DNA of 64,000 nt, from the NCBI GenBank assembly GCA_052426225.1, contig JBNJNM010000014.1:1-64000 (forward strand), in the 5' to 3' direction. A program made the position numbers and the translations under genes. Positions within the stretch are counted from its first letter, which is position 1; every line of letters begins with the position of its first letter. Source of the stretch: Zancudomyces culisetae HAW-14-8. Taxonomy: Eukaryota; Fungi; Kickxellomycota. The notes beneath the pieces are model-generated. The model was not told the DNA's origin and searched no databases. It saw nothing but the letters and a program-made list of their open reading frames with translations. Positions 12,332 through 20,509 of this stretch are shown piece after piece.

Positions 12332-12913
12332 ATGTTCAAGCCAACTTTAGTCAGCGCCTTGCTTTTCGGTTCAGCCTTGACCAGTGCATTGAACCTCAAC
12401 AGTACTCAAAAGGAATACAACAATGGTCTTGCAGATTCCGAATACAACAACGATCTTGCCGATTCCGAATACAACAACGACCTAGCTGATTCTGAATACG
12501 ACAACTACCTAGCTGATTCCGAATACGACAACTACCTAGCTGATTATGAATACAATAACGATATGTCTGGTTGTGAATTCAATGATATGCGTGGTCGTGC
12601 CAGTGGTGGACGCAAGGCCAAGAGAACAAGTGTTAGATTGTACAAGACTGCTAACTTTGGTCAAAAAATCAGCAAGCGCAGCGTCAGACGCGGAAAGTGC
12701 TACAACACCGATGAATTTGCATCAATCAAGCTCGGAAAGAAGAGTGGATTGACCAAGCCAGGAAAGGGTGTTATTGTGGTCTGTGCAGCAAAGGATTGTA
12801 CTGGAAAATGCCAAGTGGTCCGTAGATCATCGTCCAAGACCATTGCCAATGTAGCTGATGTTCTTGGTGGAAATGCAGTTTCATACGCTTGGCTCAAGGT
12901 CAAGAGAACCTAA
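12332..12913 (+). CDS. Secreted prepro-protein: signal peptide, acidic 9-aa repeats, Kex2-like KR site, highly basic 4-Cys beta/gamma-crystallin-like domain (family member A)
   Basis: Signal MFKPTLVSALLFGSALTSA; EYNNDLADS-type repeats; RKAKR; mature domain aligns with the ORFs at 17629 and 20509. Confidence 0.85.
   Translation: MFKPTLVSALLFGSALTSALNLNSTQKEYNNGLADSEYNNDLADSEYNNDLADSEYDNYLADSEYDNYLADYEYNNDMSGCEFNDMRGRASGGRKAKRTSVRLYKTANFGQKISKRSVRRGKCYNTDEFASIKLGKKSGLTKPGKGVIVVCAAKDCTGKCQVVRRSSSKTIANVADVLGGNAVSYAWLKVKRT
12413..12574 (+). repeat. 6 x 27-bp coding tandem repeat (EYxNxLADS)
   Basis: GAATACAACAACGATCTTGCCGATTCC-like units read directly. Confidence 0.95.
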
Positions 12914-14368
12914 TTTCTAGGTTTTAGAATTTAGAATTTCATTATATTAAATAGCACATTAACTGCATAGATTTTTATTTCAACTTTCATTCTTTTAAAA
13001 AACATGAAGAGGTAATTTAAAATAAAAACATTTTAATAATCAATTGTGACCACAATATATTTAAAAAAAGCAAAAAAGTAAATAAAACGGATATACTATC
13101 CATTCAATAGTAAATAGCTAGAAAAAACTGTTTAGGCTAATACTTTTTAGATATTATTTAGAATAGACCTGTGATAGTTTCAGTTCTACAGTTAATGTAA
13201 ATATATAGAAACAAGGTTTGATGGCTAAATCTTGGATGGGTTGAATATATTCGTATTTAGGATAAACAAATCCAGCAAGAATACTTGTGCTCACATCTTT
13301 AATAAACAGGACAAAATTAGATGAGAATTAGTATCGAGTCTTGACCATACGGGTAGGTAGTTGACCGCTGTTGAGCTGATACTCATAGATATCCAGTTTA
13401 TGCGGTTAAGACAAAACATCAATGGTCGAATGGGTATATTTACTACTCGAACTATCTGGAACTTGTTAATATCCGGATCAAATAAATTCACATCGAATAA
13501 TATTTGTAGATATTTGAGTCCAATTCAATCAAATGATGCTGATGCGCAAGAGTATAAACTTCCCTGGGTATAATTTAGATTGCGCTGAAAATCCTTTAAC
13601 CAATGGTGCAATGAGTTTTATCTACTACCGACACTTAGGATGATTAAAGTATAAATATAATGTATTTCGAAACTAGGATGATTTTATCTCGAATCGCACC
13701 AGGTATACAGTATTTAAAAGTATGGATAATCATTTTATCAGAAATAATACTGTGGAAACTAGCAGTATGCTGTGTACCAATAACTATTTAGAGTTAAAAC
13801 AAGTTAACGCCTCAACAAAACATGAATGAATCTATGGATCGATAGTAGTCTTGCACGACCAATTTCAAAACAAATAGTACAAAATATATTTAATCCTTAC
13901 ACAAAACGACGCTAGTAAAAGGTATACTTTGAAAAAAGTCCTAACATCGAGAGATCAAAAACACAAGAGTGTTAGCAACATTTGCTCGTACAACGGACCC
14001 AATTCAAGACAAAAATCAGAAATAAAATAAAATATTCTTATTTACAAAATACAGATTGTGAGTGTTTCATAATGGGTTAGAGCAGCATTGTGTATGGTTA
14101 AAATATTTAGAGGGTTTCGAGTTTGAAATAGCTGAAGTACATGATATGACACATAGCTTTAGTGTAAGGTGGTTTTGGAGAATATACGTACTCCCAATCG
14201 ATGAATGGGAAAATGTAGCAGATGGGGTATTGAGAAACCAGAAAAATCAGGAGTACGAAAGCTGATTATCGGAATCAACTGGTTTTTGGTTGTTTGCGCA
14301 AAATGAAACGTGTACAAATAACGCCATTGTAAATGTTGGTACAGCACCAAGAATGATCAATTTATGAC

Positions 14369-15079
14369 TTAATCATTCGAACGCATCAATGGATTTGGGT
14401 AATTTGGTCTGCCCATTGCAAAATAATAGTCGCCACCTACTCTTCGATCATCTCTGTAGTCATCTCTTCTATTGTCTCTGTATTCATCTCTTCTATTGTC
14501 TCTGTAACTATCTCTTCCATTATCCCTATAACTGCCCCTTCGATCATCCCTGTAATCACCTCTTCCATAGTCTCTGTAGCTATCTCTTCCATGATCTCTG
14601 TAATCATCTCTTTCATTATCTCTGTAATAATCTCTTCCATTATCTCTGTAACCGTCTCCTCTATAATACCTTTCAATATCTCTGTAATTGTCTCTGTAAC
14701 TATCTCTATCACTATCTCTTTCATGATCTCTGTGACCATATCTGTATCCATCTACACCTACACCACCAATTGTTGTGGCAGCAAATTTTATGTGGGCTAG
14801 TGGTGATCTCACTGGTGTATACATGTCATATTCCGCTCTGTCCCAGTTTCCATAGTTTGTATTTTCGGCATATGATGGCCGCATCTGAAAGCCGTAATCA
14901 TAGTTTCTGTAATCAAAATCACTGTAGTCGTTATATCTGGAATATCCACGTTTTTTGAGTGGCATACCAGAGTTATGAGCCTCGCTCACCATACCCATTG
15001 GATGCACACTGTTTGCACAAGCAGTGTAAAGCAGTGTAGTCATTACCAGCCTTCCGATTGTCAACTTAAGCGCTGTCAT
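14369..15079 (-). CDS. Secreted Arg/Asp/Tyr-repeat protein with signal peptide and KKR site
   Basis: Hydrophobic N-terminus ending A-C-A; LKKR; about 12 octapeptide RDxYRDxx repeats; TATAAATA upstream near 15225. Confidence 0.8.
   Translation of the reverse strand: MTALKLTIGRLVMTTLLYTACANSVHPMGMVSEAHNSGMPLKKRGYSRYNDYSDFDYRNYDYGFQMRPSYAENTNYGNWDRAEYDMYTPVRSPLAHIKFAATTIGGVGVDGYRYGHRDHERDSDRDSYRDNYRDIERYYRGDGYRDNGRDYYRDNERDDYRDHGRDSYRDYGRGDYRDDRRGSYRDNGRDSYRDNRRDEYRDNRRDDYRDDRRVGGDYYFAMGRPNYPNPLMRSND
14440..14740 (-). repeat. 24-bp coding tandem repeat (RDxYRDNG/R)
   Basis: Recurrent TCTCTGTA(A/G)TxATCTCTT units on the + strand. Confidence 0.9.
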
Positions 15080-18048: not shown

Positions 18049-20068
18049 TTAAATAGTTATAGATTATACAGATAAATCAATAGTTTTTAACTAAGCGATA
18101 AAATAGAATATTTAAAACCTCGCATAAATACAGGGATGAAGTTAAAGAGGTGTGGTTGAAACCGTAGCTTGAGTAATCAATAAATAACATTTTTTAATTA
18201 TTTTATTCAACACAGTTGGGTACTGTGTTTATTATCTTTTATTTATTGATCGATAATGGACGCGTACGGAAAAGCAAAGTTCAGGCATTAGAGAATCGAT
18301 GTAAAATTTTGTGCAGAAAAATCCTTGTATTCATAACATTTTGATGTCTTAATTTATCTGTGAATGGGAGTGATTGTGAACTGAATAATGAAAGCTAGAA
18401 GGAGATTACAGAATTTTGACGCAAAGTAAATATTGCTCGGTATATTTATAACACTTTTGACTTTACAATTAGGATTCTAGATTTATTTTCTCAAGATGGA
18501 TACACCTTTATTGTTCTCCATAAAATATTTGTACCCATAATTAGTTTCTAGTTCAACACACCAATTTCAGACTAATGTATGCAATTTCTAAGGTATGATT
18601 ATATTTTCAATGGTAAATCTGTTATTAAGAATCGATTCAGCAGTTAATTTTCTTACACTAAATACCAATTCAGAATAAATATGAAGTTACTACAATTTTA
18701 GCATAACAGGAAAACATTGGATTTATCTATTTAATGTATTTACAATATAAAATTCAAATACTTCATTTTATATTTTGATCACGTTTAAAACCAGTTTTAG
18801 ATTTTAGAATACTTTTCTTGTGACACAGTATAAATAAATCTAAAGTACATTGAATTCCTAATAGTTTTGATCAATTCCTAGAATTTTTATACCACTATTA
18901 CAATTATCTTTTCTTGGTTTAGTGCTATATATATCCATTATATCAAATATTTAAAATATAATTAAAATAAATGATAGAATTGGTAGAAAACCAAACCAAA
19001 CTGATACCCAAGCTGCGCTTGACATTGTGAGAAAAAAAACGTAAAAAATACTAAGCTGTGAACAGAAAAAAACTAGTATGATACAGATTTCGAGTCACCG
19101 ATTTAGTTTTTTTGACACTCAGAATGAATGAATCATAATCCTAAATCAATTCCGCATAATTAATTGCGGAGATAAAACTTATTTAGTGTACAATACGCCA
19201 AAAATATATCAAAAACCCATAACGTAGGGTAATGACAGCTGTTGAGATGTATACATGAGAGTAATTTAGGCTGCTTTATCAGTTAGTTTAGATTTTATTA
19301 TTTGCCGTGTGAAGAACGTTGTATAAAATATCATATATTAGCCATGTTTAGCGCTGTGTCTCGTTACAAAAATCTCTTCCCCAGTATTTCTGAAATCCCT
19401 TTAATCTCACAGCTGATATCCAAAATACTATTCTATAATGCAATTTTTTGTTAAATGATGATTATCTTTACACATTTTATGTAAACTAAACCTTCAATAA
19501 ACTAGTTCAAATTCTATATCTGTCGTGTTAATAACTATTAAATGGTTCAAAGTTCTAAAATAAATATTTTTGGTAGTGAAAACCAGCTCTAGCACACATG
19601 TTCTACTTTACGAGTATATCAAATGAATCTACTATTGCTGGTTGTTATTAAAAAGGTGTAGCAATATCATGACCACTTGCAGGCAAAATGAATGTATTTT
19701 TCACAATCAGCACAAGTCAGATTTAGGAAACTAATTTTTGTGTACCAATTATAGATCAAGTAAAATTTCTGATAAACCAATCTAGAAACCCAAGAGCAAA
19801 AGCCATTTGTATAGATTGTGTACTTTGTATTTTTTGAATTACTTTACGCTCAATATGTTTTATTTCGTTTTACATTTATTCACGTACTATGAAACATGTT
19901 AATCTGTGTATTTGGTTTCTTATTAATCATTTTATTCTCGGTTCATAATTATAGTGAATTATTGTATCTTAAACCTTAGAGTTAACCACAATTTTATTAG
20001 TTTCAAGCAATATTGCTCTCAAATGCTATATTTAATAAAAAAATGATACCAACGTTTATAAAAAAAAC

Positions 20069-20509
20069 CTAAATTGCGCGTACATTAAGAGAATCAAGTG
20101 TTGGGTTAAACCATATTACGGAATTTGCTCGCCCTCCGAGGTCATGCTGCATATTTCCAGGATACAACCAATCTGCTCTTAGAGAATTGTAACACTTTCC
20201 CAAACAGTTTATTTGAGTGCAAAACATGATTGAACCAGCACCTTGTTTGCCACCATCAAGGATGGCTGAATCAATGTTTGGTATATTGTTGCAGCGATTT
20301 GGCTGTAGTACTATTGTGTTTATTTGGTTTTTATAATAGCTGGTCATAAACATTTGGACCTCCAAGCTGTCTCTGCCATCCCGTTTAAGGAGGTTTACTT
20401 CATTTTCAGCAGTTCCGTTGATGCTGGGTACTTGAGCACTTGGAATGCTTGCACCAGCTGCAAATCCTGAAGCCAGTAAGAATATACCTGTTGTCAAAAA
20501 GTTAACCAT
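20069..20509 (-). CDS. Secreted 4-Cys crystallin-like family member C (signal peptide, LLKR Kex2-like site)
   Basis: ATG at 20509 (MVNFLTTGIFLLASGFAAGA); PNRCNN, IMFCxxxxCxGKC and LGGRANSVIW match members A and B. Confidence 0.85.
   Translation of the reverse strand: MVNFLTTGIFLLASGFAAGASIPSAQVPSINGTAENEVNLLKRDGRDSLEVQMFMTSYYKNQINTIVLQPNRCNNIPNIDSAILDGGKQGAGSIMFCTQINCLGKCYNSLRADWLYPGNMQHDLGGRANSVIWFNPTLDSLNVRAI

Follow-up and report, generated by a model that had tools for sequence, protein, structure and literature searches.

A large gene family of predicted secreted beta/gamma-crystallin-fold precursors, concentrated near contig ends, in the insect-gut fungus Zancudomyces culisetae

Background

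The beta/gamma-crystallin fold, a wedge-shaped beta-sandwich of two consecutive Greek-key motifs in about 80-100 residues, is known from microbial single-domain proteins (about 85-95 residues) such as Protein S of the Myxococcus spore coat (Protein Data Bank (PDB) entry 1NPS), spherulin 3a of Physarum cysts (1HDF) and the Abundant Perithecial Protein (APP) of Neurospora crassa (5Z6E), and from a protein of Ciona (2BV2). The toxin-type members of the superfamily, namely WmKT or HM-1 of Williopsis (Cyberlindnera) mrakii (1WKT), SKLP of Streptomyces (1F53) and the plant protein MiAMP1 (1C01), are small, basic, secreted single domains that are stabilised by disulfides. WmKT, too, is synthesised in prepro form and is cut at a KR site; it has a scaffold of 10 cysteines in five disulfides and kills sensitive yeasts by inhibiting the synthesis of beta-1,3-glucan, and MiAMP1 contains six cysteines. 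Here, three genes (members A, B and C) are described from a 64,000-nucleotide stretch of Zancudomyces culisetae HAW-14-8 (GenBank assembly GCA_052426225.1, contig JBNJNM010000014.1, positions 1 to 64,000; hereafter the window), which is the first 64 kb of a contig of 637,497 bp (C14) in an assembly of 27.1 Mb and 25 contigs. The explanation favoured for them as a whole, and judged to be probably correct, is that they come from a large, lineage-specific and mostly contig-end family of secreted precursors whose mature domains have the beta/gamma-crystallin fold.

Among the Dikarya, secreted gamma-crystallin and WmKT-like folds are well established as a class of candidate effectors (PMC9447291, PMC10462633), represented by 'cluster 14' of M. 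oryzae, by Ecp4/7/29/30 of C. fulvum and by the 'Crystallin' orphan-effector family (Derbyshire & Raffaele 2023). The family in Z. culisetae resembles these effectors in being secreted (by prediction), orphan in sequence, restricted to a lineage and recognisable only through its predicted fold, and it can therefore be classed as a new family within a known kind of protein. The likeness is one of predicted fold class, and the family differs in its occurrence in the Harpellales (Zoopagomycota), in an insect-gut commensal and not a plant pathogen, in its far larger copy number, in its subtelomeric concentration, and in a C-x4-C-x-G-x-C signature. The word subtelomeric means near contig ends throughout: telomere-type repeats were not found at the window start (positions 1-600), so that the contig start is not a capped chromosome end and the term is to be taken as close to contig ends.

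Predicted fold of the shared domain

An initial annotation, made from the letters of the window, had described three secreted prepro-proteins opening at 12332 (+), 17629 (+) and 20509 (-), and the three open reading frames (ORFs) begin where it placed them (Table 1). The layout that it read in them, a signal peptide and a pro-segment followed by a basic site, is visible in all three sequences, the basic sites being RKAKR (residues 94-98, behind an acidic pro-region) in member A, NKRK in member B and LLKR in member C. The domain of about 95 residues that it aligned downstream of these sites is similar well above chance, with a BLASTP E value of 4e-8 between members A and C (27% identity across 88 residues) and of 8e-16 between member A and the C-terminal part of member B (37% across 70 residues), and the three proteins thus share a domain of about 90 residues with four cysteines. 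The Cys/Gly/Trp motif proposed for it was recovered in an alignment of 40 family sequences, from which family conservation was read using the numbering of the member A mature domain. C25, C58, G60, S86 and W89 are invariant in this alignment and Y26, G48, C53, C62, G81 and A84 are conserved in at least 90% of the sequences, and these Cys, Gly, Ser and Trp positions stay fixed across copies that are merely 25% identical.

AlphaFold2 models built on the family alignment are all-beta for both intact members of the window, with a predicted local distance difference test score (pLDDT) of 86.6 and a predicted template-modelling score (pTM) of 0.78 for member A, and a pLDDT of 92.2 and a pTM of 0.83 for member C. 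The models were compared with the PDB by Foldseek and with 48,161 representative chains by VIA-align. For both models every row listed by Foldseek (50 for member A) is a beta/gamma-crystallin fold, with a best E value of about 4e-3 and template-modelling scores of 0.58-0.62, and in the VIA-align rankings places 1 to 21-23 are all occupied by the beta/gamma-crystallin superfamily. The best VIA-align match is 1bd7, with Z 8.5 for member A and 8.2 for member C at a root-mean-square deviation (rmsd) of 2.3 over 78-81 residues; unrelated jelly-rolls start around Z 4. An E value of about 4e-3 is weak, and Z scores of about 8 fall within the range in which the tool itself warns of common arrangements, and both must be counted against the assignment. 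They are offset by match lists that are uniformly of one superfamily and by coverage of the whole domain (78-85 of its 95-98 residues), and at the level of predicted models the mature domains of members A and C are confirmed as beta/gamma-crystallin (double Greek-key) folds, as the initial annotation had supposed.

Within the superfamily, the models share the double Greek-key sandwich of the single-domain proteins 1HDF, 1NPS, 5Z6E and 2BV2 (Z 7.3-8.1, rmsd 2.4-2.9 across 75-81 residues) and keep the hairpin glycine and the serine. The family differs from these proteins in having no match to the Pfam Crystall family and no Ca2+ motif, in the replacement of the motif 2 aromatic pair by cysteines with two predicted disulfides, in its prepro-precursor, and in its copy number of at least 140, mostly subtelomeric. 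Towards the toxin-type proteins the likeness is in the features listed above (predicted, for the family); the family lacks a sequence or Pfam match to them, has four cysteines against the 10 of WmKT and six of MiAMP1, and is structurally nearer to ordinary crystallins. In VIA-align, MiAMP1 scores Z 6.3 and 6.9 (members A and C, respectively), WmKT 5.8 and 5.9, and SKLP 3.8 and 4.8, and the 1wkt match ranks beneath 20 ordinary crystallins. The earlier label of killer-toxin-like therefore holds at the level of the superfamily only, since the Z scores are lower than those of the crystallins, there are four and not 10 cysteines, and no Pfam match supports it.

Members A, B and C have no Pfam match at E <= 0.1, none of the crystallin families (Crystall PF00030, Crystall_2, Crystall_3) was found among the 40 members at E <= 1, and neither these 40 nor the three window proteins match the Pfam killer-toxin family (PF09207). 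A sequence-profile search of the PDB returned chance matches only, to antibody CDR-like cysteine motifs at E >= 0.05. In a protein atlas the nearest clusters, which serve as leads only, consist of unnamed proteins from Ascomycota (score 0.92), with clusters of Inhibitor_I36, Syncollin and Crystall next in rank. One protein of a Logan assembly, P0036, is a secreted-looking sequence of 241 residues that combines a C-x4-C-x-G-x-C domain with a canonical Pfam Crystall domain and is a possible sequence bridge from the family to ordinary crystallins. When aligned by hhalign, the family profile falls in register on the Crystall domain of P0036, at a weak score (E 6.6e-4, probability 27%).

Counts of motifs were made on a catalogue of 94 unique copies (from about 95 loci retrieved, out of 140-195 in the genome), with some counts restricted to 85 catalogued precursors or 85 full mature domains. 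The Greek-key signature of the superfamily is [YFW]-x4-[YF]-x-G with a conserved serine in each motif. The first Greek-key motif has its aromatic pair in 68 of the 94 copies and its glycine in only 10, and its serine is merely the majority residue. In the second motif the glycine and the serine are invariant and the aromatics have been replaced, giving C-x4-C-x-G in 88 copies, and in 87 the canonical [YF]-x4-[YF]-x-G appears as C-x4-C-x-G-x-C. Exactly four cysteines are present in 61 of the 85 full domains. Cys2 and Cys4 have been lost jointly in three separate lineages that retain Cys1 and Cys3, a pattern that predicts pairing of Cys1 with Cys3 and of Cys2 with Cys4, and thus, from the pattern of loss, probably two disulfides, C25-C58 and C53-C62, in which the cysteines of the second motif are joined by one from the first. 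The Ca2+-binding motif [ND][ND]xx[ST]S occurs in none of the 94 catalogued mature domains, and a Ca2+-binding crystallin is ruled out on this ground.

These results bear on the idea that the proteins are structural or stress components of trichospore or zygospore walls or appendages, comparable with Protein S, spherulin 3a and APP. All three proteins are close structural matches (1nps Z 7.3-7.7, 1hdf Z 7.5, 5z6e Z 7.5-7.8), but the Ca2+ motif of that group is absent from every catalogued copy, and a role of this kind would leave at least 140 divergent copies, the pro-region and the basic site without explanation, which makes it quite improbable.

Family size and genomic distribution

When the genome to which the window belongs was searched by tblastn with the member A mature domain, 140 matches resulted, only two of which have internal stops, and the family therefore numbers at least 140 copies. 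The initial annotation had suggested a hidden Markov model search of the genome; a profile built from 40 members yielded 195 first-look candidates, of which 150 were scored, all at E <= 2.2e-4 and again as a lower bound. About 14 of these 150 matches are broken or split, and intact frames account for about 90%. The genes consist of a single exon, represent about 1.6% of all annotated genes (8,484), and are annotated as "hypothetical protein". Members A, B and C belong to three different subfamilies; their relatedness, which led to their description as a cluster of three genes, is upheld, but on the genome-wide view they do not form a local cluster of their own.

The distribution of the copies is strongly skewed, with 89 of the 140 matches (64%) lying no more than 100 kb from a contig end, where 10% would be expected (binomial p 1.7e-52), and each of the 13 contigs longer than 300 kb has at least one member at both of its ends (26 ends in all). 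Identically scoring triplets, made up of members from different subfamilies in the same order and with the same spacing (about 4.4 and 5.6 kb), recur 16-38 kb from the contig end at five ends, the right ends of C7, C14 and C21 and the left ends of C11 and C13, indicating a shared subtelomeric block. Enrichment at ends and blocks common to several ends, both seen here, are features of subtelomeric contingency families (in concept, those of the var, MSG or EPA-like kind), which are further marked by mutually exclusive or switching expression.

Four matches (C13:2033297-2033565, C21:29522-29787, C9:57423-57691 and also C11:713112-713374) are split into two frames at about residue 53, which looks like a frameshifted pseudogene that has spread with a duplicated block.

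The taxonomic range of the family is narrow. Searching 1.84 billion representative proteins with the profile gave only 37 matches, and the 20 of these that were examined by cluster comprised 13 from Z. culisetae, three from other Harpellales, one unplaced Logan protein and three that are long, Cys-rich and evidently spurious. The relatives in other Harpellales are single proteins of Smittium mucronatum, S. culicis and Furculomyces boomerangus, the first of which has three tandem domains and no pro-region. Nearly all database proteins of the family carry the name "hypothetical protein AX774_g... [Zancudomyces culisetae]", and the family is not mentioned in the Harpellales genome papers PMC5954228, PMC11630075, PMC12611240 and PMC13373617 or in the zygomycete secretome paper PMC9391592.

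Precursor architecture and selection

A hydrophobic, signal-like N-terminus is present in about 80 of the 94 copies, as scored by a hydrophobicity heuristic alone. The pro-regions that follow are hypervariable, low in complexity and usually acidic or polar, with EYNNDLADS repeats, NAQN repeats, or His, Gly-Arg or His-Gly tracts. Members A and B have in common the FN[DE]M motif that had been seen just before the basic site, and 42 of the 85 catalogued precursors contain it. Mature domains are mostly cationic (median isoelectric point 9.5, with 85% above 8.5; median net charge about +7). Member A is an example, with a net charge of -11 over the whole pro-region, or -15 without its last eight residues, and of +17 in the mature domain. 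Across copies the charges of the pro-region and of the mature domain are anticorrelated (Spearman rho -0.52), which would fit an acidic pro-piece that masks a cationic domain. In 57 of the 94 copies (about 60%) the start of the domain has a dibasic site no more than 15 residues away. The genome encodes one kexin-type protease, a 746-residue ORF on C15 with Peptidase_S8 and P_proprotein domains, so that the predicted Kex2-type cleavage after K/R-R is feasible. The Kex2 processing proposed in the initial annotation is compatible with this gene and with the basic sites of members A, B and C, and it would extend to only the part of the family that has a dibasic site.

The expectation of a rapidly diversifying family is not borne out by pairwise Nei-Gojobori (NG86) comparisons of the mature domains. 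The ratio of non-synonymous to synonymous substitution rates (dN/dS) is about 0.11 for 100 pairs at dS 0.03-0.3 and 0.36 at dS 0.3-0.6; no pair exceeds 1 below dS 0.6, and the ratio comes close to 1 only in pairs with saturated dS. Purifying selection acts on recent copies, which are real, constrained genes, and rapid adaptive diversification is consequently not demonstrated, although positive selection may still act at individual sites.

The surroundings of about 95 loci were compared all against all for a partner gene of the kind expected of a toxin-immunity system, and no non-family ORF is shared across subfamilies, flank ORFs recurring only within recent duplicates; as the flanks span only 0.7-1.5 kb, this is weak negative evidence.

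Member B as a decayed copy

Member B runs in one frame from its ATG at 17629 to 18048, apart from a single TAA, and has no frameshift. The identical TAA is present in an independent, older Illumina assembly (GCA_001969505.1, LSSK01000981.1), and the HiFi and Illumina copies differ at six coding positions, all six of them non-synonymous, two of which strike an invariant cysteine and the invariant serine. On the strength of the shared TAA and of the non-synonymous changes at invariant residues, member B is, by its sequence, a pseudogene and a dead copy. The protein annotated there, OMH81091.1 (P0022), bypasses the TAA by means of an intron that would delete the first hairpin of the domain in the Illumina copy. 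An alternative genetic code was considered for the TAA and rejected, because about 90% of the other copies are free of stops and because the second assembly shows decay at invariant residues. Over the whole locus (17560-18060), seven of about 500 bases differ from LSSK01000981.1 (1.4%), a high value for one strain that may be due to heterozygosity, strain difference or relaxed constraint.

A dead copy among the three of the window, together with the roughly 14 of 150 profile matches that are broken or split, could be taken to mean that the whole family is a non-functional, decaying subtelomeric repeat with open frames that arose by chance. Full open frames in about 90% of copies, the low dN/dS of recent pairs, the invariance of Cys, Gly, Ser and Trp across copies of 25% identity, and the confident AlphaFold2 models all argue otherwise, and in member B, where constraint truly has been lost, invariant residues change at once. 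This explanation is hardly credible.

Features of the window and neighbouring genes

The coordinates of the three members and of the triplet blocks are collected in Table 1.

Table 1. Coordinates of members A, B and C with their precursor features (positions in the window), and of the triplet blocks that recur near contig ends
Feature	Position	Strand	Evidence
Member A, intact, single exon, 193 aa	12332..12913	+	ORF; family hidden Markov model 103.8 bits
Member A signal peptide, ~aa 1-19	 	+	Hydrophobic signal-like segment; predicted
Member A 9-aa repeat EYNNDLADS, 27-nt unit x 5.5, tandem	12413..12561	+	Tandem Repeats Finder and translation
Member A Lys-Arg codons, predicted Kex2-type site, aa 97-98	12620..12625	+	Sequence; cleavage inferred
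Member A mature 4-Cys beta/gamma-crystallin-fold domain (predicted), 95 aa, aa 99-193	12626..12910	+	AlphaFold2, Foldseek, VIA-align
Member B, pseudogene; signal peptide, pro-region with SESKFNEM, interrupted domain	17629..18048	+	Profile 99 bits across the stop
Member B basic site NKRK, aa 44-47	17758-17769	+	Sequence
Member B in-frame TAA within first Greek-key motif	17812..17814	+	Read directly in the sequence
Member C, intact, single exon, 146 aa; ATG 20509, stop 20069-20071	20069..20509	-	ORF; family hidden Markov model 110.4 bits
Member C Lys-Arg, aa 42-43 (LLKR at aa 40-43)	20381-20386	-	Sequence
Member C mature domain (predicted), from ~aa 49	20072-20365	-	AlphaFold2, VIA-align, Foldseek
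Recurrent triplet blocks	C7:1091-1101 kb, C11:22-32 kb, C13:17-27 kb, C14:611-622 kb, C21:3394-3404 kb	 	

The subfamily of member A comprises 12 copies in the genome at 94% identity or more, some of them internal in contigs, and the copy number of the EYNNDLADS repeat differs among these paralogues. Their common unit, gene and flanks together, is only about 2.1 kb, with the coding part better conserved than the flanks. Carriage by a mobile element was considered for these copies and set aside in view of the short shared unit and because no transposon features were seen. Between members A and B the window encodes (14369-15079, -) a secreted-looking protein of 236 residues with Arg-Asp-Tyr repeats, which belongs to a small family of about 15 matches. 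Together with an A-type copy, this gene has been duplicated in an inverted segment (C14:191.9-194.4 kb), and it has also been duplicated with P0010-type members (C14:75-80 kb and 121-126 kb). A fragment of a trypsin-like serine protease (a 167-residue ORF at L021:577-1077, and also at L026 and L027) adjoins three copies that belong to a single A-like subfamily; the copies at L026 and L027 have no signal peptide, and that at L026 is missing one conserved cysteine.

Member C has a predicted signal peptide and a short pro-region, and the net charge of its mature domain is only +1. Directly beside it, at 22472-26224 (-), is an ORF of 1250 residues with no Pfam match.

Proposed function

As read from the sequences, the precursor consists of a signal peptide and a pro-region followed by a crystallin domain of about 90 residues, which a basic cluster ending in K/R-R precedes in about 60% of copies. 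The precursor would enter the endoplasmic reticulum, where applicable with the acidic pro-piece masking the cationic domain, and a Kex2-like protease would release into the gut lumen a compact mature domain locked by its disulfides. This domain would most likely bind surfaces of other organisms. The direction of this activity can be proposed only tentatively. An action on microbes or competitors is favoured, with a confidence that stays somewhat short of even, because of the charge, the size, the disulfides and the prepro layout of the proteins, and because of the precedent of WmKT, MiAMP1 and SKLP.

Several observations weigh against this account. About 40% of copies are without a dibasic site and some subfamilies, including that of member C, are not cationic, so that one mechanism may not fit all copies; the copies that yield the charge correlation are related and are not independent points; and the signal peptides depend on the heuristic noted above. 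The toxin-type proteins WmKT, SKLP and MiAMP1 are structurally less similar to the family than non-toxic crystallins are, and mass amplification in subtelomeric regions is commoner in host-interaction and surface families than among antimicrobial peptides.

An alternative is a different target, in which the domains would act on the cuticle of the hindgut, the epithelium or immune factors of the mosquito larva, or would form part of an adhesive or holdfast matrix, with the subtelomeric copies as a variable repertoire. IPSE/alpha-1 of Schistosoma mansoni (4EL6), a single secreted beta/gamma-crystallin domain from a host-dwelling organism, ranks with the top structural matches (Z 7.9 and 7.4, over 84-85 residues), although the identity is 8-9% and IPSE is a glycoprotein of an animal parasite with IgE binding and nuclear targeting. 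Secreted families of gamma-crystallin-like proteins recur as candidate effectors of fungi (PMC9447291, PMC10462633), a member at every large-contig end is usual for contingency and host-interaction families, and the Harpellales are said to depend on attachment to the gut lining (PMC5954228). Against this, the fungus lives on a cuticle-lined hindgut and does not touch host cytoplasm, the mature part shows neither an anchor or transmembrane segment nor an adhesin-type repeat, and recent copies are under purifying and not diversifying selection. An action on the host or substrate is rather unlikely, though it is the main rival to the microbe-directed activity favoured here.

Implications

The broadest proposal is of a recombining arsenal at every chromosome end, in which more than 140 killer-toxin-like crystallin proteins are variably expressed and shape the microbiota of the larval gut, or evade or engage the host. 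It is speculative and, as stated, unlikely; if true, an early-diverging fungus that lives in a disease vector would possess a subtelomeric contingency system of secreted toxins or effectors. Z. culisetae lives as a symbiont in mosquito larvae and can be cultured, and it has reportedly been linked to changed mosquito microbiota and larval development. The placement of the family in the beta/gamma-crystallin superfamily provides testable hypotheses, namely that the proteins are antimicrobial, that they are processed by Kex2 and that they contain two specific disulfides. The placement also extends the theme of crystallin-fold secreted effectors from plant-pathogenic Dikarya to a zoopagomycete of the insect gut, and offers a compact model for the subtelomeric amplification of secreted-protein repertoires in fungi.

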